Positions 7,226 to 30,091 of a DNA stretch of 64,000 nt are shown here, one piece after another. Positions within the stretch are counted from its first letter, which is position 1. Every line of letters starts with the position of its first letter. Both the position numbers and the translations under genes were made by a program. Source of the stretch: Blastocystis sp. Blastoise (taxonomy: Eukaryota > Protista > Bigyra: Opalinata). Where the stretch lies: NCBI GenBank assembly GCA_039096225.1, contig JBBPEB010000005.1:1302001-1366000 (forward strand), written 5' to 3'. The notes under the pieces were generated by a model. That model saw only the letters and a list, made by a program, of their open reading frames with translations, had not been told where the DNA came from and did not search any database.

Positions 7226-8897
7226 ATGATAACAACTCAATTTCAATTAGATGAAGTTCAATGTATGTAAATGTGAATGGAAAACGCTTAATTATTTTTA
7301 GATTTGTTTACATTTCAAGATGAGACGAAATTATGGATTTCTAAAGAATTTATTGAGAAATACAATCAATTACCATTTTATGATATTATTAAAAACTCTG
7401 AAAAATATGAAGATGATAGCTATTATATAGATATGCCTTCTTCTACAATGGAAAAAGTGATTCGCTTTTTATTGGCAGAAGACAAAAATATTTCTTCTTT
7501 AGATTTTAAAGAAAGTTATGATATATATAAAATAATTTATGAATTTTCAGTTACGGCTGATAATAGCATTCAAAAATGTTTATTATTTCATATTAAAGAA
7601 TTATTTATTGATTATTTGAATGAAAATAATTATGTTGTATATAATAAATATGATATTTTTTGGCATTCTTTGAGAAAATTAAATATTAGCATAGAATTAT
7701 TCAGTTTAGAGAAGAAAAAAATATGTATGCAAGGTAAGTTTATATTATAATTTGCAAATATAATATATATAGGATTATTTACACCAAAAAGAAAAGATGA
7801 ATTATTCTATTATTCGATTCTTTTTAAAATGATGAACGTTACAACAGTTGAAATTGAATGTATATATATATATATTTATTATATTATAGCTAATAATCAT
7901 AATAATATAGATTCATATGCCTCCAATATTCCAATAGAATATATATGTCCAAAATATATTAAAGATATATTTCCGTCCTTAGAAAGTTTAACGATAACTA
8001 GTATATATCTATATAATTCTATTTTTTTATTATATATAGTAAATATACATTATAAGAAAAGTGAATTCTTATTAAAACCAAATAGTGATGAATATATAAT
8101 GGAATATGCTCGCTTATTTGATAGCAGTTTCTATACTCTATCTGATTCTGAAGAATATGAATATTTTACAAGATCAGAAATGAATGAATATAATACGATT
8201 TCTTCTTTAGATCTTAATAAATTATATTATTCACATGATTTAGTTTACGTCTATAAGAGAAATAAAGAAAATAATAAATTACCTAAATTATATAAATATT
8301 TTATTAATGAAGGTATAAATACGAATCATTATTTACATGTAGAAATGAATGGAACAACCAATGAATATACATTATTTGATCGAATCAGTATTGAATATGA
8401 TGGTATATTTATATAGTATATAGTATTTAATTTATATCAATATATATATAGAGAAAACAAATGATAAGACTTTGTGGTATATAATAATAATTATCTTATA
8501 AATATAGATTAAATAGTATCAATGAATTATCTTCACAATTGAATACATCTCAATTAATTCAACTTTCTACATATATGTGTAGTTCAAATATCATGATCAA
8601 TACAAGTAAATCAAAATATATATATATATATATATATATTATAACTAAGGAATTCATTATAGATTTCTTTTCAACATATGAAGCTATGGCTTTTATGAAG
8701 GCATTGGAAGATAGTATTTTCGATTCTTTAAAGATATTAAGTGTAAGATGGAGTATATTGATATGACTTTTATTATTATTATTATTATTAATTATATTAT
8801 AGTTAAAGAATTAACTTTTGATATTAACAAAAATCTATATATAAAAATAATGACAACTCATTTGTTTCCAAATGTTACTGAACTTATCTATAATGAG

Positions 8898-8951
<54 letters not shown>

Positions 8952-10494
8952 ATTTCGAACTATCTTCAATAAAGAAAGAATGTTTTCCAAAATTACATAT
9001 TATCAACATTGATATTAAAATAAGTAAATTTATTTATAGATATCTAATATATTATTTAATAGCTCATAAGTTTGTTGAGTCTCTAATTCCTGTAAATTTA
9101 ATATCTATGATTGATACTATTCGAATAAAAGAAATTGAATCCGACCAAAAGAAGGAAATAGCTCTTCAATTCGATAATTTAGCTTATATTTATTCAATTT
9201 ATATAGATGGAATTGGTATATATATATATATATTTAACTCTAAAACAAGGTATATAATTAATAAAAAAAAAATATAAATATAGATGATTTAATATATTAT
9301 TGTCCTCATATAAAAGAATTATTAGAAAACAGTCTTATTTCAATTCATAAACTTACGGGTAATAGTTTTCATTCTTATTTTTTTATAGTTTTATTATTAA
9401 TATTTATCATTATATATATATTATATACTATACAGTTGATACTTCTGATTTTGTAAATATCAAAAAATTAGATTATTTTAAAAATTATAAACAAAATATT
9501 GATTTTTTAGATATTAAATTAAAAGGTATTCATTTATATTATATACATAAAAATATAGTTGATATATATTTCTAATACTTTTTTTATTTATTTATAGATG
9601 CTCACGAAAATAATGAATCAAATAATAATGATATAATAAATTCTTTAGAAAGATTTTTAACGAGTAGTCTATTTCAACATTTGAATAGTTTTAATCTTAT
9701 TTGTATATATATATATATATTATTATTATATTTTATATAATATTTATAGTTGATTATAATATAAGTATAAAATATTTAAAATCAATATCAAATATCTTTA
9801 ACAACAATAAAATTAATACTATTCATAAATTAACGATTAATTGTATATTATATATATATATATAAATCAATATATAGTAAATCTAATCCAAAAAGATTTA
9901 TCATCTGAATATCTTAATATATATGAAAAAATTATGGAGAAATTAATACCTAAGGCTTCTTTTGTTAAAATAGAATGTAATTATTTATATTTATATAAAA
10001 TATATTATTATGTTAAAAGAATTATTTAATTAATATAATGATTCTTATTAGATTGTCCTATGACTGTTATAAATCGATTCATTCTCAAGGGTTGTTTTCA
10101 TAATACAACTCAATTAACTCTAAGTTTATATATATTATGTAGATATAATTATTCAATTATAGAATATAATATATCTCATTTTATAATTTATATTAATATT
10201 ATTCTAGTTATTAATGATATACCAAATGATAATTTTTTGGAACTATATACTACTGACAATTTACCTAAATTAGAATATATTGAATTATGTATATACTAAT
10301 GATACTATATTATATATATGAATCATAAATATATATACATATAATTCTAATCTATAATAATTATTTTTATTAATTATTATGTATTTTAATAGGTAAACGT
10401 AAGGATAAAAAATGGTGGATTCATTTTATTCAAAGATTAATTAATTATATTTATAAAAATAACTTTCCATTATCAACTACTATTCGATTAAATA

Positions 10495-11443: not shown

Positions 11444-14400
11444 TTACTCCTTATTTTCATTTTCGTCGATAGTTGAAATAGAAGAAATAGAACCATCTTT
11501 CTCTACACCTTCTTTATATGTTTTTATATCATTTTGTAAATGAGGAATAAATAGAGGAGGACTATAAGCTTTGTTATCAAGTTCCTGTTGAATATCGAGA
11601 TCTGAAGGAATAACAGTTCGACTAATACGATTTATAGGAGATATACTAGTATTTCTATTAGAACTTGTTAATAAGGTATTTTTATTCTTTTGTTTTTCTT
11701 TATGATTTATTTTTTTTGTTTTTTTATTTATTTTTTCATCATTATTAGTTATATTTTCATTATTACTCTTATTATTTTCAATAATATTTTCATTATTATT
11801 ATGAGGATGAGACAAAGAAATAGATATTAATGGATTAGGAGAGGATAATGGGTTTTGAGATGAATATCCTGAAGAAGAAATAGAAGAAGTTCGATGTCCA
11901 GAATAATAGCCAAAAGAAGAATTTCGATGAGAAGGAGAGACAAGAGAAGGAGAACCATTTGAACTATATCTATTATTATTCCATAAAGGAAGAGGAGATT
12001 GACTGAAATCTAATCGATAATTATTATTTGTATATATAGGTATATGAGATAATGTATTATTAGAAGAAATAGGAATTTGATTTGATATATTGATTGATGA
12101 ATCATTCAATAGTTTAGATTGACCTATAGTAGATACTATAGGTATAGGTATATTTGAATTATTAAGAATAGGTGAATGACCATTAGTATAAGAATGAATA
12201 CCTGATCGAGTAGGAGATATAGTTGAATTAGATATAGGATGAGGAGATGAAGAATTATTATTATTATTATTATTATTTAATATGATTTGAGGAGTAGATA
12301 GATTATTATTATTATTTTCTTGATTTATAGATTTATTATTAATAGAAGATTGAGGAAGAATAACCATAGATTTCACACGATTTGTATTATTATTATTATT
12401 ATTATTATTCATTTGATTCATTTTTGATGCATTTAGAGCATCTATATTAAGAGATCTTCTTGTTAATAATGATTTACGATCTATTATTATAGTATCAGGT
12501 AATTCATTATTCTCTTCAGAATTCTTATTTATAGTTGATGAATTGATTGGATCATGAGGAGATTTAGAATTATTATTATTATTATTATTATCATTTATAA
12601 TCTTTGAATCTTCTTCTATTGGACTTTTAGATCCTTTTTTAACTTTACGAATAATAATTTTCTTTACTTTTTTCTTATTCTTATTATCTTCATTTAAATC
12701 ATTATTATTATCATCTTTTCTATCTTCAATAGTTTCAGAAATAGGTGTTGTATTTTCAGAAACAGGAGAATTACTGTTTTTCTTAACAATCTTCTTTACT
12801 ATACGTTTCTTAATAATCTTTTTTACTTTACGTTTAGGTTTCTCTTCTGTTGATTCTATAGGTGTAATTGATTCATTATTCTCATTATTTTCTTTATGAA
12901 TAATATCAACATTATTTTCATTATTATTAATTATAATATTATTTCTCTTTGATTTATAAGAATCTAAACTACTATGTTTTGATGAAGAATTAGAATTCGA
13001 ATTCGATTTTGAATTTGATATAGAAACACTTGAGTTCATGGATTGATGTTTAGAATCTACTATAGGTTCATGAGATATATTTAATATAGACATAGAAGCT
13101 CTAGAAGGATGATTCTGTTTTGGTGAAGATAGTATATTCATAGACGATCTCATATTTCTTATTGTAGAAGAATCTATAGTTTTTGATAAAAATTCTCTTC
13201 TAGAATTTAAACTAAAATTATTCTTTGAATTATTTTCTTGAATATCTTCATTATTATAATTATTATTCTTTCTTTGATTCATATTCAATAGAGTTCCTCC
13301 ACGTAAGAAATTAGGATTTCCTACAACAGAATCTGCTGTGATTATCATCTTTTTATTATTATTATTATAAAATGAATTATTATGACTATTATTACGACTA
13401 TTATAAAGATGAGAACTATCTCCACTTCCATCAATATCTAATCCCATAGATAAATCTTCAGTATCATTACTATATAAATGATATCGATCTCTATCTTGAT
13501 TTTTAGAATTCATCTTATGATCAAAACTATTACTATTCTTATGATGATATTGTGAATAGGATAAATATAAAGAAGGTCTATTAATAGAATCTTGATCATA
13601 AGTACTACAAGTACTACTCGTACGATGGAAATTATTCATTGAATAAGATCGAGTTATATTTGCATTATAATATTCATTAAATGATATTGTATGAATACTA
13701 TGACTAAATAATGAATGTTCTAAATTCATATTCATAGTTGCTTGTAATAAAGGTAATAAACGTTCTTTATCATTATTATCTGTTGATTTTAAAATAGGAG
13801 ATGTAGATCCTATTGTTGATGAAGGAATACTATGAGAATCAACATTATTTATATCTATTCCTTCAGATATATTCATATCTGTATTACTATTAATAGAAGA
13901 AGAACGTTCATTATGAATAGAAGAAGAATCACTTGAAGGAAATTGTAAGGATATATATCCAGGAGAACTAAATGAACGAGTTATTGAATGAGGCTGTAAT
14001 TGTAATTGTTGTAAATAAGTATAATATAACTATAAAAAGGATTTTTTAAATTAATTTATATTAATATAATAATAATAAATATATACTTGTAAAGCTTTTA
14101 TACGTTTAATTCTTCGTTTAATTTCTTGTTCATTTTTATTTACTATAATAGATTTTTCTTTCCATAATTCATCTTGTTTCATTTTCTGTTGAGTTTCAAA
14201 AGCATATTGATTTTCTGTTAATCGATATTTACCTCGATCTCTTAAATCAATACCACTATTGATCCATTCTTGTGTTTCACTATGCCATTGATCTTCAATT
14301 CGATCACTTTCTTTTGTTGTCTCTAATTTCACAAAGGTCTTATTCATAAAATCCCATCGAAATTTATATCGTAATAACATAAATAATAAATATCTATAGA

Positions 14401-17400
14401 AATAGATATATTATTTTTATAAATAATTTAAAATATAATAAATAATAAAATAATAATAATAATTAATAAAAAAAACAACTTACAATAAAATAATAAAACA
14501 TGGAAGATAAACAAAGCAAATAATCATTGTGATTGTATTAATTTGGAAATTTTGATTTGTATATATATAAGGATAAGATCCTTTTGATAATTTGGGTCTT
14601 ATAATAATACCATAAACACCACTTTCTTTAATATTACATAGAATCATACTTTTTTCAAATCGATATTGAATTTCATCTAAACATTCAAATTCATTTCGTT
14701 TCTCATTTAATTTAGCAATACAATGTTCATCTTCTGTAATATCTAATGGATGACGATAATAAGTATTATTCTGAAGTACACGAGGTAATAACCATACTTT
14801 ACGAGGGAACATTAAATCGATCTCTATTGCATTCATTAACGATTCTACACGTTTATTATAAATATCTATAAAAGTTAAATTTAATATTAATCCATGTTGA
14901 ATTACAGGTAAATGTAAAGATAATAAAGAAGAATCATATCGAGGAGGTTCATATATAGCTATAGGTTTTCCTGAAATAAAACGTAATTCTTGAAGACGTG
15001 TATAATTATTAGCTTTATATGTATATTGATTTAATTGTGAAGATGATAATGTTGTTATGGATAAAAATATTGGTAAATTTGTAGAATGTAATTGAGCTAT
15101 ATAAAAATAATATATTTTATTCATTAATTAATATATATATATACCATGAGGTGTATGTATATAACCATAAAAATCATTCGTTTGAGTATATAAAATAATT
15201 TGTTTTGATTCTTGACCTAATAAAGTAATACGATAATCATAAGGAAGTATATCTCTTGGATTTAAATATAAACATTCAGATATAGAATAATGACAACTAC
15301 CATCAAAACATCTATAAATGATTTATTGTTATTGTTATTATTATAATAAAAAAATTAATATAAAAAATAATTAAAATAATAAAAATAAAAATAACAACCA
15401 TACCTATACATATTATTTGGACAATTATACAATCCTTTACATGATAATGTAGATTCTGTATTTGAATTGAAAGATATACATGTAGAATCAGGACATCTTA
15501 ATTGATTCTTCATACATCCATAAGTAATAGGACATGTTAATCTACAAATACCATCTGAACATAATTGATATGTAGATATAAAACAACTATATGTATTATT
15601 ATTTGAATATAGAATAGGAATAAAAATAGATAATGTTGTAGAATCATAATGAATATTAATTTGATTTGATTTTTCTTTAGAATAAATAGAATAATCATAA
15701 TAATGATAAGGTGAATAAATAGATCTTCCTACTTGTTGTCCTGATGGTGATATAAATATAGAATTACAATCGATATTGATATCTACACAAATACCATTAG
15801 GACATCTTTTAGGAGATGTAGTAGGACAAGGAGGAATAGGAGGACAAAGAGAAATATCACGAAAAGACCCATCAGGACATAATGTAATAGCAGAAAAAGG
15901 AGAAGGAGAAGGAAGAGATGAAAATAATGTTATATTTAATGTTTCACAATAAAGAGGAGAAGATACACATAAATCATTATAACAATGATAAGGAAGATTC
16001 TCAGGACAATTTGATAGTAATGGACAATCACCTTCATTTAATACACATGTACCTATAAAATATTTTTATTATAAAATTATTATATATATATACCATCAGG
16101 ACATTCTACAGGTAAATGTGAAGGACAAAAAGGAAGTTTTTCTGGATCTTGCTATATATATTATATTATTATTAGTATACAAATAAAAATAAAAATAAAA
16201 ATAAAATAAAAATAAAATAAACATCACCTACATACATTACAATTTATACATGGTTTACATAAACTATAATGAGCTACACAACTCATATCATCACATAGAA
16301 AAGGAATATCTTTTGGACAAATAGGTCTTTTTGGACAACTTCTATATAGAAAACTAATTTCTTGATCTGTTTCTTTTCCTTGTATTAATGTATAATTTTC
16401 TATAGAATTATAAGGATTATCAGATTGATCTTCATTTATAATATTTAAAGATAATAAAATAGGTGAATATCGTTGACCATGTAAAGGAATACAATCTCCA
16501 GAAGCACATGCTTGAGAATGATATATAGAACATCTATTTAATAATAAACATTGTGAAGGATGAGAAACACATTGACCATTTGGACATATATAAGATTGAT
16601 TTATAGGACAAGAATATGTATTAGAATTTAGAATAGAAGAACATTCATTTCTTGTAGAAACACAAGTACCATTAGAACATAATATAGGATGAAGAGGAGA
16701 ACAACCATTAATAAATGTACATTCATTAGCATTCCTTACACATTCTCCTCGAATACATTTATAAGGTCTTTCATGAGGACAAGAATGATATGTATATTCA
16801 GTTGTACAATTATAAGAATATTTCACACAACGACCTGTTGGACATTTATAGGGAGATGAGAGTGGACAACCTATATATATTATTATTATTTATTTATTTA
16901 TTAATATATATAATATATATGTAATAAATAAAACCTTACCATTATCACTAAGACAATCTTCTTCTTTTTCAACACATAATCCATTATATAATCCTGTTTT
17001 ACACATATAATTATAAGGAGATGTACATATAGTTCGATCAGTACATAAAGAAGAAGAAGCACGACAACTACCATCAGAACAACGAATATAATTTGTATTA
17101 TAATTACTTGTATTACAAGGCATAATCAAAGGACAATCTGTATACGATTTCACACATATACCTATAGCACATCGAATTGGTTTATCTTCACTACATAATG
17201 AAGGAAGACTAGAAAAATAAGAATATAAATATTGACGATCTACAAAATAAACTAAAGGAGATTCAAAGAGTTCTGAAGAAAATAAGGATAACTTATTATT
17301 ATTATTATTTATTAATGTATGTTCATATTCATTTAATAAAGGAGATGATTTCTGAAGATTATTTTCTGTAAAGAAAGATTTATCCATATATTTCATAAAA

Positions 17401-20400
17401 GAATCGATTATTGTATTATATAGAGTATTTATTATAGATTTTATATTATTCATTATTTTATTTATATAACTATTATTATTTATATCTGTATTCAATAATG
17501 AATTAACAAATAAAGAAGGAGAAGGAGATGTATCTTCAGGAATAAATGAATAAGAAGAATAAGGACAATAAAAAGTAGATATCATACATAAACCATTCTC
17601 ACATTGTTTATATGGAGCAACACATAAAGCTAGATAATAGTTATTTATTATTATAAATAAAATAATAAAATAAAATAAAAAAAAAAATAAAAAAATAAAA
17701 TAAACAAACATACGACTACATTCTTCATCTTCTTTAATACATTCACCATTATAACATGATTTAGGTTTAGAAGAAAAGCAACCATTCGAAAGAGGACAAT
17801 CTTCTATAGATTGACGACATGTACCATCTAAACAACGTATATATCCATTAGTATTACAAGTCCAATCACAAGAAGAATGATAAATATCTATATTATTCTT
17901 TGAACTATCTTTTGAATAACATATTAATGTATTATGACACCATCCACTAAATTGATCACTATTACAATTATCATTCGATGTACATTCTTCTTTTGAAGAT
18001 ACACATAATCCTGAAATACATTTATAAGGTTTAAACATAGGACATAAAGGTTCAGAACATAAAGAAGAATCACGAACACATGTACCATCAGAACATAAAT
18101 ATTTATCATAACTACAAAAACCAGTCACATAATGATCACTTTCCATTGAATATTTATCTAAAAAAAAATATTATATATTATAAAAAAATATATATTATAA
18201 AATAAAATAAAATAAAATAAATAAAAAAAAATTATAAAATAATAAAAAAAAACATACTATAATAACCTTCATATCCATTAATACAATCACTTCGATCTTT
18301 AACATATTCTCCATGAATACTACAGAAACTAGTAAATTTAGTAACTTGTCTTGCTCCTGTAGTAATACATTTTCCATTAAGACAATTAGAAGGTACATAA
18401 GGAGGTATAGGTGGACAATCATCTTCAGAAACATGACATGATTGATCCCAACATAATATAGGATTTGTAGTTGGACAATATAATAATGGACATTTCTTTG
18501 TTATAAATACACAACTACCATCATTACATAATTTATAATTAATAGGACAATGAATAGTATTAAGACATTGATTCTGATGATAATGACATAATCCATCACT
18601 ACATAAAATAGGTTTATTTCTTGGACATATACGATAAGAAGGACATTGTTCACTTTGAGATATACAACTACCCTCTATACATCGTTTACTACCTTTAGGA
18701 CAAAGAGGAGGAGGAATAGAATTCGATAAGATATTCGATTGAAAGGATGTATCTGTAGATAATGGATCCCAATAATATTTATTTATAGAAGTTAAAGATC
18801 CTTCTATAGAAGCAATAGGATCTCCTGTAGGTATAAAATAGGGAGATATACTATATATATAATAACTATCATCACTATAATGTATATTATATCTTCTACA
18901 AGGATAAAATTGATAATTACGTGAACATAAATGTTGATATCGATCTTTTATTTTATTTATACAATTATTTATATCTTCTTTATTATTATATACATTACAT
19001 ACATCTATATACATTTCTAAATATTTACTAACACATTGTTCTATTGTATGTTTTATATTTAAATCTGATTTATCATGATATTCTGTTATATCTAAATATT
19101 CTTCATTATATTCTTGTAAAGAATTATAGATATAAGGGAATATATTAGTAACACCATAAGTACTATCTTCAATCATATAACAACCTCCATCTTCACATCT
19201 CATTTCATTATCTCTACATACAGATATAGTAGGACATAAATAAGAATGTTCTACACATATTTTTTGATAATCACACATATAGAATCCTAATGGACAATGA
19301 TAATTAGATTCATCAGTACATAATGAATAAGAAGATACACAATAACCAGTATCACATAATATAGGACTCGTAGTAGGACAAATAACAGGACTTGAACATA
19401 ATAAACTATTTCGTACACATGTTTTACTAGAAGAACAATAATATGGATAAGCAGAAGGACAATGAGAAGTTAATAATATTGAAGAAGAAGGAATAGTTAT
19501 ATTTGTAGTAGTTTCTAAAGATTTATTTTATTTATATAGTTTATTATTTATTATTATTATATAATATATATATATACTTCCTTGTTGATTTCTTTCAATA
19601 AAATGAATTTGTGAATAACAATCTTTAGTATTTTCAACACAAGTACCATTATCACAAAGAATAGGTTTTTCAAAAGTACATAAGATACTAGGTCTACATT
19701 GTTGATAGAATAAAGCACATCCTCCATTAGGACAATTTATATAAGGAGATCGACAAAGAGGTGTTTGAGAACAATAAAAAGATGAAGGTTTACATGTATT
19801 ATCAGGACATAATACAAGAGGAGAAGGACATGTAAAGTTATTAAAGAAAATATATAAATATATAAATAAATATAATAAATATAAATAAATATTATAAATA
19901 TATAAAGGATATGAAACATGTGTTGGACATTCAAGCATAGAAACAACACAAGTATTATCATTACATTTATAAAAGTTCTTTGGACAATTTGTATAAATAT
20001 TAATGATTGTAGATTCATTTAAAGATTTTTCATAAATAATATTATTATAAGCATCTTTATGATAGAGAGGATAAGGAAATAAAGTAGTTTCTTCATTATT
20101 ATTATTAGTAGTAATAGTTTTAATAGAAGAAATAGCTTGAATATTATTATTAAGAATAGAAGAAGATGAATATAAATTCATATTTCTTGATCTTGTATTT
20201 GGTGCACTTTCAGATAAATTTAAATATAAGAATTTATTATCATATTGATAATTATAAGTTTCACCAAAAATAAATATAGAATCCGAAATACATTGATTTG
20301 AAGGAGATAAATGATAATATCTTGGACATGTAATTGAAGAAGGACATAAAGTAGCATTCTTAACACAATATCCTTGAGGACATCGATAAGGATAGGTTAA

Positions 20401-23400
20401 TGGACATGTTGTATATATACATTCAGATATACTATAATTATAATTATTATTATTATATTATTATAATATAATATATATATATACTTATGTGTACACATTC
20501 CATCAGGACATAAAATAAGTGGTTTAGGACAAAAACGAAGAGAAGGACATTCAATTGGATCAATAACACAACTTTTCTATTTATATATATATTATTAATA
20601 ATAATAATAAAATCATATAAAATACTTTATCCCAACATAAAATAGGAGCATAAGAAGGACATTGAATAGAGTTTTTATATTGATTACATTCTTCTATAGA
20701 TACTGCACAAGTAACTAGATCTCCACAAGTAATTGTAGAAGGTGGACAATGAACTTGTTGAGGACACATTTGTTTATTTATAGCTATTGTTCCATCAACA
20801 CATATTACTTTATTTGTATCATGTATAGGAAAAGAAGGACATCTAAAAATATATATATATTATAATATATTAATTATAAAAATAAATCAATCTATATACT
20901 TCATATAATTATCAACACAAGCTCCATTTTCACATATATATCCATGACAAGTACAATTATGAATATCTTGTTGACAACCTATATGAATATCTTCAGATTC
21001 ACGATTCATACAAGCTTCCATTCCTAGAGGACAAGTAAGACTATTATGACAATCATTCCAATCAGAAACACAATGAATAGTTTGTCCATTATCAACGAAT
21101 TCTATAGGATTCTTTATGTAATCACCATTCATATTATTATAACATATATAAGGACTAAGAGAAGAATGCTGCTTACATAAAGAAGGAAGGAAAACAAGAT
21201 TTGGTTGAGTACCTAATAATATCTTTGTATAGATTTCTGTATTTGTAAGATCATCCCAAGTAATATCTGTTAAATAAAAATCTATAGATCCATAACCATA
21301 TAAAGGAGATAATATAGTTAAACTATGTATATAAGGAGTCTGAGATTTGAAAGGAATAGTCAATCGAAGCTATATACATAGAAATTTTATGAAATAATTA
21401 TTATTAAATATATATATAAAATCATACAGATCTTTGTTTTCCACTTGAATCAAGAGTAATAATAGCAAATAGAGTTTTATTGGATGTATTAATATCTAAT
21501 AAATTCCCTAATGCATCACGAATCTTAATAATCATAGTCACATCTGTATATAGAGAAGTACTCTCTGAAATAAATGATATATATGTATTTGTATATTCAG
21601 GTTCTAAAGGAGAAAGAGGAGTAATTTTATTAAGAAATATTATATAGATATATTTTTATAATTATATTATATATAATATAAAGGATATAGATAATGATAT
21701 TGAAGATATGGATGATTATTAATAATAGGATAATATATATAATCACCAGAATAGATTAATTTATATTCACAAGTATAGGAATCCTTTATAAATATACAAG
21801 GGAATAGTTCAGTATGAAGAATAGGATTTCCATCACCCTCTATATCCAGTGATACATCCATTTCAATAGAAATAGAATAGGCATCAAATTCTATTGGACG
21901 TTCATATATATCATAAAGATATATATATATAAAACAAGTTGTATTCACACGTTCACATTCATCATTCTTAAGGACTATTTATATTTATATTTATTTATTT
22001 ATATATAGATTAATAAGAATACTTGTAGATTGATATCTGATTTGTGCTGGATACAGTTGAATCTTTAATAATGGAAAAGGAGAAGTTGAATTATAATATA
22101 ATTGAAGTGTATATTCAGTTAGTATATTTATTAAAGAAAATAATTTTTATTTTTTAAATATATTTATAATTATATAAATAGGATATAATTTCCAGGATGA
22201 GTAGAAGTTAAATCATTATAAATTATCAAATATTGACCTATATAAAAATATTATATTTTATTATATTATTATATATATACCAAGTTCTTTATCATATAAT
22301 TGAACAGTCAAATGAGGTGGAATAAACATTGTATTCGACTATATAGAATAATAATAATAATAATATATATATTATATATATACAGAAGATGTAATAGCCA
22401 TAGAGAATAGATTTGTGTCAAAATAGGTATATACAGGATTCTCATATATATCTACAGTAGATAATAAGAATGATCCTTTTGTCTATTAATATATAATATA
22501 ATATAATATATAAATATATACATTTTCTCTTAATCCATGTATACTACATAATCCATCAGGTAACTTATCTTCATTCTCTAAGGGAGAACAGGAATATATA
22601 TAGGAAGTAGCTTCTGATGGTTTTATAATAGCTTGTATTGGAGAATTCTATTCATATATATATATAGAATATAATAATATAATAAATATACTAATAAAGC
22701 TACTCCAGATCGTTTTACATATATATCATAGTTTCCAATTGTATATAAATATAACGAAAATACATATACATTTCCATAAATTAATATTGCATAACTATAT
22801 AGATATATAATAATAATAAAATATATATACCTATCAGTTTCTATACGAGTTTCATTCTTATATATTTCTATATATAATTCTTTTGATATATCTTCTTCTA
22901 TTGTATTATTAAAGGAGTGATTATTAAGAAAATATTTATTTATATAATAATATAATATATATATAATATAAAAGATATATCAAAGAGATGAACATGAATG
23001 AAAATTTGATTACCAGCTATATAAGCTATATATAGAAATAATAATGATAATAAATATATATATATATACTTTTATTAATTCCTTCATCATCTAATAATTC
23101 TATATATAATAAAATAATAAAAATACATATAATAAATACCATTTTTTCCATAATCTTCATAATTAGGAACAGGAATAGGATTATTATTAGAAGGGAAATG
23201 AATAAATGATTGTTGAGGGTCCATAATTGATGGAGAAATAATCAATTGAAATTGTTGTTTATAATGAATGTATTCAAGAGAAAATGTTATTGTGTATGTA
23301 TCAGCATCAATATAATACATTCTATATAATATAATAATAATATAATATATATAATATATACTTTGTATAAATAGTATTATGATCAAAAATAAAGATAGCT

Positions 23401-26254
23401 GGTTTATTCCCTGTGCAATAAGGTAAATCACATACATTGAGATTATTACCCTTAGAATCAATCACTTTATAATATAGTAATAATAATAATAATAATATAT
23501 ATACATGTTGATTTTAAGAATGGTTGAATATAAGTAGGATTAATATCATTACCATAAATATCTCGTGGATGAAATGTACAATTGAATTCTATTCCTGTAG
23601 TTAATTCATCAGGACAAAGTAAATAAGAAGGAGATCCAAGAAGATCTATATAATTATATTATTATTATATATTATATATATACTCATATTAGGATAAGCA
23701 TAAGTAGTAGTAGTAAGTATTTCAATATAGGGTTTATCTTCAAAGGATGTAGAAATAGTAATTGTATATAGATCTCGATAAGAAGAAAGATGAAGAGGAG
23801 AATCTATTAGAAACTATATAAATATTAATTATATATATATTATTAATAAATATACATGAATATGATTATTATTGAGAGTATAAGAATAGAGAAGAGGAGG
23901 AGAAGAAGTTAAATTGAATTGTTGATTTATAGGAATAGGACTATATATAATAAATAGTATATAAAAACAATATACATTTCATTATTATGAATATCTTTAA
24001 CAATAACATCTAATTCTCTTCTTATTTCAGGTACAAATCCCATACTGAATGTTCCTGAATAGGTTGATGATAAAGAATACTTTAAACATGTCCATGTAGT
24101 AATTGTCACTGATGTATCCAATATAGGCATATTATTATATAATAATATAAACGTATAATTACGAGCAGTAGGAAGATGAGGTATAGTTGTATATAGATTA
24201 AAGAAAATAATAGTATTTAATTATTATTATTAATATATATATATATAAAAGGATATTTATAAGTACCAGGTGATGTAGTTTCAACTATATACATGATTCC
24301 ATCATAATAATCTTCATCTATATTTATCCTATATATATTTATATTTATATAATAATAATAGAATACCATTTAAGATTAGATTGTTGACCCGTAATAATAT
24401 GCTGATTTTCATCAAATATTTGAAATGAAAAGAATGGATCAGTTTCTAAATTGACATTTAATATCGATGATACATGAAATTTAAGAGGAGATGTTAATCT
24501 ATACAGATATATAAAAAAATAATAAAAAATATATATACATGAATAGAGAATAAGGAAGAGAAGATAGAGTAATAGGAATATCTTTAGAGAATAGATTATC
24601 CTGCTTATTTTGAAAGAATAGACGTATATATAAATAAGGATATTCTGATTCAGTAAGACCAATAATAGAAGACATTTCAACAATATAATGAATATGAATA
24701 CTATAAATAAATAATATAAATAATAATAATAAATATACGTATTATTGAGTATATGTTTATCTACAGTAAAAGGAGTATCTTCTAAAGTATCAGCTCGTCG
24801 AATATCTATATCAATATATTCTCCTTCATGATTATATATAGAAAAAGAAGGATCTTCTTTTGAATATCCACCTTCTTCAATATAATATGTAGCATTCAAT
24901 GAATTAAAATATTCATCTTTTAAATTCATATAGATATCTCCACAAATAGAAATATTAGTAGAATCACAATAAGAAACAAATTCAATTCCAGTACCATGAA
25001 TATCAGTATGAGCAATATAAAGAGTACCAGGAACAACAGTTAGATAAGAATCATAGATATTTCCAGAAACTAATGTAATCAATGAAATCTTATGGAATCC
25101 TGATACTTTAGCAGGTATAGAACATGTACTAAGAAGACTTATTGAATCTGGATTCATAACATCATAATAAGTATTTCGATCTATATAAAATTAAATTAAA
25201 ATTATATATATATTATATATATACCTTCTACATAACTATAATCACATATTTTATATACACTTTGTAAATTAATTACTGAATTATTATATCTATAAATTAT
25301 ATATATATGAATAAAAAGAATAATAAAATAATTACATATCAAAGAATTTGATGTTTATAGGAATAATATCACCAGCAGTATAAAGAGAATCATGAGTTAC
25401 TTTTATTGTAGATGTACTATATATATATATAAGAGAATAATAATAATAATTAATATACATTTCAGTAGAAGGTATAGTAGTGATATTCCATTCTAAAGAG
25501 GACCAAATATTATCTTCAGATAAACAATCTATTTTCACAGTGATATTTCTAACTTTTGAAGGTAATTGAATAAATGTATAAAGAGGACAAATAGAAGTAT
25601 ATTGATATTCTTGTGTATATATATCAAGAGAAGGAGATGTTGAAAATGAATAAAAGGATTTCTGAGTATACTATATAATAATATTATTTAATAAATAAAT
25701 ATATATATATATACATCTCCATCACCTTTAATATACACTTTATATTTATCTCTTCGATTATCTAAACAATATCCATCATCATATATATCTCTTGTATATA
25801 TATACATATACGTTAATGTACCTGCAAAACTAATAGGACTGTAAAAAGTAGAATTAAGAAATATATATAATATTATTATTGAGAGAATATAATATAAAAT
25901 AAAATAAAAGGATATATAGATTTCAGTTTTCGAGCAATCATTAGGACTAATTCTACTTTGAATAGTACAATATATATAAGAATTAATCATATCAATATCT
26001 TCTTCTTCTTGATTTAGAAGACGTACATATAAATGACCATTAGAAATCTCACGAAAGAAACGAATGGATAATGTATATTGTGAAGTAGAATCCATAGTGA
26101 TTCTATAACTAAAGAATTGATCGGATTCACCTGGAAATAAAGGAATATCAAATCCTTCTGAAGATGTTACATATAATTTTATTATAAAATTATTCTGATT
26201 CACTAAATTATAATAACGATCTCTTACTATTAATGTAAACTATATATATTATTT

Positions 26255-26286
<32 letters not shown>

Positions 26287-29200
26287 CAACACTTCTATAT
26301 AAAGGAATAATTGAATAGATAGTAGAGATAGAAGAGTAGAGATAAGAAGGAACATCACTATATACTGATAATTGGAATGGAGTATTAATCACAGATAAAC
26401 CATTCACACTATAAAAATATTATTATAAGTTTATTTATAATTATACAAATATACATCCATCTAAAATAAACAGATTCTGAAGTATACGAAACAAATTGAT
26501 ATATTAATTTTTCATGTAATGGATCTATATATAATAATAAATAATAATAACTAAATAAATACCTTCTTTTGAAGTAAAGAAATAAGATTGATCTGTATTT
26601 AATAGAATTGTTCCTGTAAATAATGTTGTAGGAACTGTATTATTATATTCATCACGAAAATATATTTCAAAATTATCTATATATTTATGTTATTATTAAA
26701 TAAATATAAAATAAATATATACGAATAACACCAACAGTAGTAGTTCTATTTGGTGGTATAAAAATAGTATTAGAAGGAAGAAGAGAACCATGAGTTACTG
26801 TCCATGCAGATAAAAATGGAGAATAATGAATAGGAATACCATCTACTGTTATATAAATATCATATATAGCTACATAGATAGCTTTTAAATATAAATAAAG
26901 AGAAGAAGAAGAAAGATAGGAGAAGGTATATGTAGGAAGAGATGGAACTATATATATATATAGAATAATAATAATAAATAAATAAAATAAATACCGTTTC
27001 GATCACTAATAAAAGTGACTTTAATTCGTTGTTCGAGATCGATATCTATAGGTATTTGTCCACATCGACTATTAAGAAATAATTGAAGTGGATATATAGA
27101 TCCTGCAGTACTCGTGAAGAAGAGAGGATATTCAGAAGTAGTAATAGTAGTAGAAGTCAAAGGAATCGTTGATACTGTAGGAGATATCAATTGGATACCC
27201 TATTCAATATAATTATATTATTATTATTATTAATATATACATTTTCGGGTGAAATAATTTCTAAATAATATCCTGATGATAGATGAGAGACAGAATCCTA
27301 TATATATAATAATAATAATGATTATATATAGAATGATACAAGATTGATATTGAGAGTATGTTTATTCGAGAGATAGAGATGAAGTTGATTATATCTAGAG
27401 ATCAATTGTAGAGTTAATTGTCCATTATTATAGAAGGAATAGGATACTGAAGTAATTATAGAAGGAGATTTCATTGTAGGAGGAGTATCACCAGGTAAAT
27501 ATACTTGAAGAACTATATATTATTAATATTTAATATTATTATATTTATATACTATTTTCATTAAAGAAGAATATATAAGAATTAGATTGAGAGAAACATC
27601 GAGATTGAAGTATATTATTATAAGGAATATCAGGGTTTATTACAGGAGTAGAAGAAGAGTATTGTATATAAGGATGAAGAAGAATACAAAATGGAGATAT
27701 GGATTCTATATATATATAATATATATTTAGTATATATATACCTAAATAGATATTTGATTTAAATTGAAGTATTTCATACATATAAATATGATATCCAAAT
27801 ATTGATGTTTTATTAAGAGATACAGTCTAAATATATATATATAATAATAAATATATATATATACTTGTTGTTGAATATGAATATTTTGGAAATCTCTTGT
27901 ACAATAATAAGGATTTTCTCCTTCACTGTTTAAAGTACTACTATAGCTATTTCCAGAGAGATTAATACTACTATTCATATTTGGTATAGTTGTAGTATCT
28001 TCTTTATCAATAATCATAGAAACTACTTTAGAGAGAAGAGGAGCATCACAGAGAAATGTCAAATTCGTTTGAGTTATAAAACGAGATATAGAATCTATAT
28101 AATAATAATATTATTTTTATTATTATTATTATTATATACTTGATTGAGTTCCACATGTTCTAGAAGCAAAGAATATAGATATAGAATAGGTGATTCCAGG
28201 AATAAGACCTAATTTATCTGCATAATTCGTTATATTAATATGAGAACCAACTGGAGTATTATAACTATATAAATAATAATAATAAATAATATTTAATATA
28301 TATATATACCCTCCATAATCTAAGAATAAATGTTTATTAATAAAAACCCATAATCCATTATTCGTTTCAAAATCTATAAATTGATCTGTTCTATTCTCAT
28401 ATCTATATATATAATAATAATATTATATAAATATAAAATAATAATATACAAGAAGAATAGATTTGTTTTCATAGTAAACCAACATTTCTTACCAATATAT
28501 TCTTCTATTGGACTTAATGCATATCCTCCTTTTACATCTGTTAAAGGAAAATAAGTAGGACTAGAAGATATAAAATTTTATATATATATATATATATATA
28601 CTAATTAAGTGTAAGAAGGTTTTTGGTACCAATAATACCAATAAGAGGAAAAGAGAAAGAATAAGAATTATTACTTTCTGTAAACCATGTATTGAAGGTA
28701 GAATATGTAGAATTCATAGATGCACTATAAAAAGAAGAATAAAAAAGAAGAATAAAAAAAAATATAATATATATATATATATATACAGGAAGATCATAAT
28801 CATTGAGTTCTGATTCAACGAATCCAGTTTCTTTAGAACTTCCCCATTTCTGAAAGTCAGTATTCCCTTGGGGATCTAAACAACATAATCGAGAAATCAC
28901 TTCATTATTATGGAAATCATCAGTAATATCCTCTACGAAACAACATCCATCTCCTGCAGCAGTATAATCATAATAGGTACTCATTGTATATATTATAGCT
29001 ATAAAGAATTATATTCATTATATATATATATATAAATATACGAGAAGTAGCAACAAAAATTCGAATATTGTTATCAGCATAATCATTCACTTTATCACAT
29101 ACTGTTTCTACTCTATCTTCTTTTGAATATAAATTTGAATATATATATCTATATAAAAAAATATAAAAATAATAAATACATATATATATACTTTGGATAA

Positions 29201-30091
29201 TTTGAAGGTTGTTTTGTAATAAAATTATCTGTATAATGAATAATACAATCACGAATACCAAATCCTTTCTCATCAACATATAATGCATATACTCTATATA
29301 AATAAATAAATAATTAATAATTATATATATACTTATAAGTAACTGATTTTGTTTGTATTTCAATATATTCACCTCCAGGAAGTGATTGACAAGATTCATA
29401 AGGCCATTGATTTGTTATAAATTCATTAAATGTAGAATACTTTTGAAAAGTCATTATGAAATATTCATCATCAGACCAACCATTTATATTCAATATTAAC
29501 AACTTTAACGAGGTTTCTGGCAATAACGAAATAGGAAGGGAACCTATAAATATATTTCAATTTATAATTATTTTTTACAGATAAATATGATGATAAGAAT
29601 CATAAATTTCATATTTATAGAAATTAAAAAAAAATATAAAAATCATACCAATTACGTCGTAATCTCTGAATGAATTATTCTCTATGTTCTTAAAGCCTGT
29701 AGGATCCGATATATGTTCTATATAACTTCGTTTATCTGTTATAAAGTCATTATTGGAATTCGAATAAAACATTTCCCACATTTGACCTTGAAAATGATAA
29801 CAATAAGTCTAAATAAATGAATAAATGATTCTAGAATTCTATTTATATATCATTACATACAAGATAAACTTCATTACGATCTTTTCCTATCCAAACATAC
29901 TCAGAATCAAAATAATAATCACCTCCTTGTTTTATCATACAATCTTGTGCAGGCAATTCTCTTGATTTACCTATTCAATTATGTGGAATATTATGGAATT
30001 AAGAGAATAGAAAAAAATTACCTAGTGTTTTTTCAGAATTCACTGCTAAACATGTAGTATAGATGAATAAGAGTAGATAAAATATTCTCAT
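11444..30091 (-). CDS. Giant type-I membrane protein (about 60 introns, roughly 5,000 aa): signal peptide, fibro-slime/PA14-like domain, filamin-like Ig repeats, CPxxxPxxCxDGxCV Cys-rich repeats, GPS-like motif, TM helix, Asn/Ser-rich cytoplasmic tail
   Basis: Start MRIFYLLLFILYYTCLA at 30091. Fibro-slime-like motifs at about 28.1-29.0 kb (DFQ, GFVESEL..DLPV, TFNTWF, YFPL, WFTM, LWVFINKHLFLDYGG). Repeated AG..(I/F)...(R/K)D.(Y/F)(G/D)N motifs at 21-27 kb. Dozens of Cys repeats at 15.3-21.2 kb. Hydrophobic TITMIICFVYLPCFIILLYLLFMLL followed by RYKFR. Last exon ends at TAA 11444. One junction (about 28.75 kb) is unresolved. Confidence 0.85.
19832..19912 (-). other. U12-type AT-AC intron (81 nt, phase 2)
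   Basis: GTT TC|ATATCCTTTA ... TTTTCTTTAAT AACTTTAC|A TGT CCT. Removal gives THVSCPSPL and restores the Cys-repeat spacing. Confidence 0.9.
21621..21688 (-). other. U12-type AT-AC intron (68 nt, phase 2)
   Basis: TAT CT|ATATCCTTTA ... TTTCTTAAT AAAATTAC|T CCT CTT. Removal gives YHYLPLSPLEPEY. Confidence 0.9.
22122..22186 (-). other. U12-type AT-AC intron (65 nt, phase 1)
   Basis: GGA AAT T|ATATCCTATT ... TTTTCTTTAAT AAATATAC|TA ACT GAA. Removal gives HPGNLTEYTLQ. Confidence 0.85.
22917..22978 (-). other. U12-type AT-AC intron (62 nt, phase 0, variant 5' site ATATCTTTT)
   Basis: TTT GAT|ATATCTTTTA ... TTTTCTTAAT AATCAC|TCC TTT AAT. Removal gives HLFDSFNN, matching the filamin-like D.FGN motif. 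Confidence 0.85.
24189..24256 (-). other. U12-type AT-AC intron (68 nt, phase 2)
   Basis: TAT AA|ATATCCTTTT ... TTTTCTTTAAT CTATATAC|A ACT ATA. Removal gives PGTYKTIPHLP. Confidence 0.9.
25841..25915 (-). other. U12-type AT-AC intron (75 nt, phase 0)
   Basis: ATC TAT|ATATCCTTTT ... TTTCTTAAT TCTACTTTTTAC|AGT CCT. Removal gives KTEIYSPISFAG. Confidence 0.88.

Follow-up and report, generated by a model that had tools for sequence, protein, structure and literature searches.

Six AT-AC introns, very probably of the U12 type, clustered in one Blastocystis surface-protein gene

Physarum polycephalum carries many minor (U12-type) introns per gene, and its small nuclear RNAs (snRNAs) are altered. 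PMC10639083 cites it as the recognized example of minor-intron gain on a large scale; outside Physarum that paper reports very little evidence of de novo minor-intron creation, and it calls for comparison within Blastocystis. AT-AC-rich U12 introns and a full minor machinery are published for Blastocystis ST1 and ST7 (PMC5608401; PMC10639083). ST1 has 346 U12 introns among 35,412, in 319 genes (∼1%; Gentekaki 2017, PMC5608401), and 77% of its minor introns are AT-AC (Larue and Roy 2023, PMC10639083). How many can a single gene hold? Human and mouse genes reach a maximum of three, with 3 such genes each (Olthof 2019, PMC6717393); the higher per-gene counts in PMC6800510 often involve overlapping alternative sites, and minor introns co-occur in genes above chance in 21/21 genomes tested (Moyer 2020, PMC7367187). 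Here we describe a 64,000-nucleotide stretch of DNA (the window) in which one surface-protein gene, the host gene, contains six AT-AC introns that very probably belong to the U12 class. The source is a tortoise gut Blastocystis, probably strain Rus-B; a long exon of the gene matches a Blastocystis sp. Blastoise protein at 95–96% identity. The paper on the tortoise genome (PMC12129017) nowhere mentions U12 introns.

The locus resembles ST1 in genus, in apparent machinery, and in the dominance of AT-AC among its minor introns. It differs from ST1 in the strain's tortoise host, in holding six such introns in one gene, in their length (62–81 nucleotides against ∼40 in ST1), and in their AT-drifted branch sites. 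Set beside the human and mouse genes, it has twice their maximum, and its six introns are nonoverlapping, all AT-AC, and located in a gene for a surface protein. What is unusual about the cluster is its size; AT-AC minor introns as such were already familiar from the genus.

Six introns with U12 signals

The gene model, taken together with donor and branch signals, places the gene and its six putative U12-type AT-AC introns (i1–i6) as follows:

11444..30091, minus strand: host gene (local gene model without internal stop)
25841..25915, minus strand: i1, 75 nucleotides, phase 0
24189..24256, minus strand: i2, 68 nucleotides (71 possible), phase 2
22917..22978, minus strand: i3, 62 nucleotides, phase 0, donor ATATCTTTT
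22122..22186, minus strand: i4, 65 nucleotides, phase 1
21621..21688, minus strand: i5, 68 nucleotides, phase 2
19832..19912, minus strand: i6, 81 nucleotides, phase 2, within a cysteine-rich repeat

Four donors read ATATCCTTT, one ATATCCTAT, and one ATATCTTTT; four of the six match the extended 5' splice site RTATCCTT exactly, and the other two carry one change each. A U12-like (TTCCTTAAC-like) branch motif ends 6–12 nucleotides before the AC in 6/6 AT-AC introns, whereas 0/54 of the gene's GT-AG introns have one, and both forms of this branch site differ from TTCCTTAAT by one C-to-T change. None of the six contains a single G, so none has an internal GT or AG. The composite pattern of donor, branch site, and AC occurs six times in the window, always on the sense strand of the host gene (local shuffles: mean 0.14, maximum 2). 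The AT-AC introns are also longer than the GT-AG introns of the gene, whose median is 45 nucleotides. For i2 the 3' end is ambiguous, since 68 and 71 nucleotides both keep the frame; 68 suits the branch spacing. Judged by these DNA signals, the six segments are very probably real U12-type introns. One RNA run contains 0.31 of the window's words.

Removing the six segments matters for the reading frame. A dynamic-programming model that begins with the ATG at 30091 and finishes with the stop at 11444 comprises 60 introns; its frame stays open for ∼5,170 codons (∼5,150 amino acids), and it chooses all six AT-AC introns when such ends are allowed. Restricted to GT/GC-AG ends, the model scores lower by ∼400 log units and leaves 7 internal stops, on which ground we reject a GT-AG-only structure. 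Because excision at AT...AC would restore a single frame, each full-length copy of the gene is predicted to require the minor spliceosome six times. Annotation restricted to GT-AG is unable to yield the protein. A deposited model from this gene family, P0001, is a 340-amino-acid fragment, consistent with breakage by a gene finder. The intron total is ∼61, as one more is likely near 28784–28725; on the minus strand, positions 28725–28784 of the window are AT-rich and intron-like, the model reads through them in frame, and ending an intron at the closest AG would break the frame.

These results agree with most of a first-pass annotation made from the sequence alone. It had described six AT-AC segments of the U12 type with these donors between 19832 and 25915, longer than their neighbors, at different positions, and making up about 10% of some 60 introns; all six were located, and the model bears out the proportion. 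Its statement that minor introns are reported in Blastocystis was also correct (PMC5608401, PMC10639083). Its warning that GT-AG-only gene finders would fragment the gene is upheld by the internal stops; as an account of what broke P0001, it goes no further than consistency.

How exceptional is the clustering, which the annotation had set against a usual one minor intron per gene? At assumed U12 densities of 0.5% or 1% (ST1 has ∼1%), the chance of at least 6 U12 introns among 61 is 7e-7 or 3.5e-5, respectively; a single gene with six greatly exceeds chance expectation. Across the 33.34-Mb assembly (34 contigs), two strict U12 patterns gave 42 and 108 matches, many of them in the host-gene family or due to chance, and these counts show no genome-wide expansion of the Physarum kind. 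A donor-only count of 1149 against 809 in the control is contaminated by antisense U2 acceptors and serves as a rough ceiling only, and no excess of GT-AG U12 introns was seen (8 matches against 16 in the control). Such pattern counts suggest that U12 introns number between tens and a few hundred genome-wide. The phases of i1–i6 (0, 2, 0, 1, 2, 2) and their repeat contexts differ, each maps to an orthologue site of its own, and similarity among the interiors does not exceed background; thus, neither tandem domain duplication nor the copying of one intron explains them, and we reject both.

The encoded protein has a signal peptide, a putative fibro-slime domain, cysteine-rich repeats, one transmembrane helix, and a low-complexity tail; immunoglobulin/filamin-like repeats are inferred. 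Database searches were made exon by exon, with the joined model reserved for the local frame check, and the fibro-slime assignment comes from:

28141..28401, minus strand: a pair of neighboring exons whose matches cover successive parts of the fibro-slime domain TIGR02148 (E 0.0013 and 0.03)

Each single-exon match is below the family cut-off; homologues bear the fibro-slime name. A Pfam search with all host-gene exons and word-index searches with exon 47 and alignment A1 returned no result. A one-exon search found long relatives in many other protists, and the family is not lineage-specific. Two old paralogues of the same architecture, P0141 and P0087 (WA158_005722 and WA158_004569), occur in the same strain.

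Near-identical copies and intron loss

The genome contains ∼7 full-length, 9 5'-partial, and 3 3'-partial copies of the host gene, with exons ∼98.6% identical. Among them, i2 measures 65–70 nucleotides across 12 loci, i3 57–65 across 9, and i6 68–78 across 5, and the lengths of i1 and i5 are likewise variable among pattern matches. For i2, i3, and i6 the differences are not multiples of three, whereas donor, branch site, AC, and exon flanks stay constant. Out-of-frame variation between fixed ends is the behavior of introns and is impossible for coding sequence. In the window copy alone, i1 (75 nucleotides) and i6 (81 nucleotides) are stop-free multiples of three; on account of their out-of-frame lengths in other copies, we reject the possibility that these two are retained as coding sequence.

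Several copies are rearranged. In two, i1 has an insertion within it or at its 3' end, ∼2.0 kb long in one copy and ∼2.9 kb in the other (C26:34831-36796 and C26:1094222-1097081); these are possibly mobile elements. In the 3'-partial copies (C33:689660, C28:416334, and C15:768306) similarity starts at the second base of i6, and two search patterns did not reveal their donors. The 5'-partial copies L011, L022, L023, L024, and L030 share a breakpoint near window 22749, and L014, L019, and L033 share another near 23665, other sequence following in each case; this suggests that both sets are chimeric genes.

Is intron loss still under way? Of 174 GT-AG intron states scored at 12 paralogue loci, 11 are precise losses, which often fall at neighboring sites, and copies whose intron lengths are otherwise the same differ in their loss tracts. 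Losses were scored at window 25039 and 24917 and in loci L011, L012, L014, L022, L024, L028, and L030. Comparison with the paralogues places the window's own losses here:

24917..25040, minus strand: two adjacent GT-AG intron sites empty in the window copy and occupied in 12/12 paralogue loci examined

Some 20 reverse-transcriptase open reading frames occur in the genome, many longer than 2,400 amino acids and equal in score, which suggests recently active retroelements. As the published assembly was polished with DNA reads only and reverse transcriptases are present, recombination with complementary DNA (cDNA) is the likely cause of the losses. Reverse-transcriptase-mediated intron loss is described, for example in PMC3652778, as precise and adjacent. 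The likeness extends to these features and to the presence of reverse transcriptases; the difference is that here the losses separate ∼98.6%-identical copies within one assembly. No U12 intron was lost among 15 copies scored for i1, 13 for i3, 7 for i5, and 7 for i6, a lack that is suggestive only.

Candidate minor-spliceosome components

The snRNAs and proteins implied by the U12 assignment in the first-pass annotation were recovered in part. Covariance-model searches of the genome found U11 (62.9 bits) and U6atac (63.8 bits), together with a U12 candidate whose branch-pairing box is canonical. On paper, U11 is complementary to all three donor forms at donor +4..+9. A 17-nucleotide element lies 41–48 nucleotides upstream of U11, U12, and U6atac, with exact copies only at those three loci; one-mismatch copies at C13:968069, C16:768404, and C24:858411 may, by this sequence resemblance, mark other snRNA genes, perhaps U4atac. 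On the protein side, domain searches gave an SNRNP25-like candidate (PF18036, over the cut-off) and three PF05253 matches as zf-U11-48K candidates.

Age and origin of the cluster

Are the six positions old? We modeled colinear orthologue loci (L037, L038, L039, L041–L043, L053, and L054) on gut-type contigs with ∼30-nucleotide introns, putatively from mammalian-type Blastocystis. They are GC-rich and only 33–36% identical even to one another, and their intron positions were assigned with exon ends scored separately. At the site and phase of i1, an AT-AC U12 intron is present in L037, L038, L042, L043, and L053 and absent in L041; this match is the weakest (z 3.4), backed by intron order and a common DCS motif. 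The i3 site and phase are occupied by an AT-AG U12 intron in L038, L041, L042, and L043, and those of i4 by AT-AG U12 introns in the same four loci and by AT-AC in L039 and L054. The AT-AG introns lie at L038:8706-8742 and 9347-9383, at L041:8112-8148 and 8815-8859, and in L042 and L043. Donors and branch sites at the matching positions are textbook U12. Each of i1, i3, and i4 is cleanly absent from some orthologues. The orthologues L037, L038, L041, and L053 each have a radical SAM gene as an opposite-strand neighbor; the window flanks showed no such gene.

At none of the six sites did any orthologue show a U2 intron, and there is thus no sign of U2-to-U12 conversion, which the first-pass annotation had offered as one origin and which we reject. 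Its other suggestion, lineage-specific gain, fails for i1, i3, and i4: with half of the six positions U12 in such distant orthologues, a recent burst of intron creation is not shown. Of 25 intron positions in the orthologues, about 20 have counterparts in the same order among the window introns, and retention does not differ between U12 (3/6) and GT-AG (∼18/52) introns (Fisher P = 0.66). This ordered mapping and the lack of a difference in retention fit loss from an intron-rich ancestor; they do not polarize i2, i5, and i6. On these sequence comparisons gain is possible for at most those three, with gain and loss unpolarized.

The account we favor, and regard as rather probable, is that the six U12 introns are genuine and that the cluster is mostly old, thinned by intron loss and multiplied by gene duplication. 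The introns would have arisen singly, each at a site unrelated to the others and probably no later than the Blastocystis stem, and at least i1, i3, and i4 would have been U12 introns before the tortoise and mammalian types split. From an intron-rich ancestral gene, precise loss, probably by recombination with reverse-transcribed mRNA, would have been heavy in the mammalian-type lineages and would continue between recent copies here; i2, i5, and i6 would most simply be old introns lost on the mammalian-type side. Whole-gene duplication would afterward have multiplied the cluster. In splicing, U11 would pair with donor +4..+9 and U12 with the AT-drifted branch site, where the C-to-T change from TTCCTTAAT would be tolerated as a G-U wobble.

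Several results weigh against this account. At i2, i5, and i6 no intron lies at or around the sites in any orthologue modeled; i2 and i5 are placed only approximately, the absence call resting on intron-free open frames. The comparison covers Blastocystis-type loci only, and many of the GT-AG position matches have modest scores that depend on order. The U12 snRNA match (46.8 bits, E 6e-7) falls under the Rfam cut-off of 53 bits, and U4atac gave no covariance-model match in the genome; a weak complementarity candidate for it at C1:197559 lacks the upstream element. The single U6atac found (C21:544821-544937, minus strand; L002:1501-1617) has GCC at positions 12–14 where the family has AAG. Human U6atac pairs G14/G15 with donor C5/C6 (PMC4980772), so donor pairing is reduced here: against donor +4..+8 two pairs and a wobble are left, short of canonical pairing. 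This deviation bears on the snRNA and not on the class of the introns.

Could i2, i5, and i6 instead have arisen de novo in the tortoise clade, beside three old U12 introns and amid a wider intron gain that accompanied a larger, AT-rich genome? Their absence from all mammalian-type orthologues examined fits this, as do ∼35 window introns without an orthologue counterpart against one orthologue position (column 1388) without a window counterpart. The long homologues of other protists are single open reading frames on their contigs, and recent gain is put forward in PMC10639083 as an explanation for the phase pattern that ST1 minor introns show. However, the orthologue introns are mostly a patchily lost subset of those in the window gene, and retention of U12 and GT-AG introns does not differ; on balance we think de novo origin unlikely. 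A bolder version would make Blastocystis the second lineage after Physarum to create minor introns de novo, preferentially in a gene already bearing them—three of the six on the stem of the genus and another three in the tortoise clade—aided by relaxed U6atac pairing and by slow splicing that would shield U12 introns against cDNA-mediated loss. That is speculative, and we doubt it somewhat more.

Selection could also have kept the cluster as a throttle or regulator, surface-protein output being tuned by slow splicing of the minor introns or by retaining the two that are stop-free. The lack of U12 losses among the copies, despite GT-AG losses nearby, would fit such regulation, but the copies are not independent, the losses are regional, and a U12 intron still present in a cDNA template would escape loss even if selection played no part. 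As i1, i3, or i4 was freely lost in mammalian-type orthologues and retention in other copies would add lengths that break the frame, we consider regulation very unlikely. Least credible of all is that these are not minor introns and come instead from errors in the assembly, from low-complexity inserts rich in AT, or from AT-AC splicing by the major spliceosome. The off-consensus branch sites and U6atac and the missing U4atac speak for it; the composite signal far above shuffles, its conservation in 7–15 copies, the U11 complementarity, and the textbook signals at the same positions in GC-rich orthologues speak against it.

The locus bears on the origin of minor introns and on their clustering in the same genes. 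It offers six positions with genus-wide orthologues; at two of these positions AT-AC and AT-AG ends interchange, and introns are now being lost among near-identical copies, so that gain versus loss, and the relative rates of U12 and U2 intron loss, become testable in one locus.

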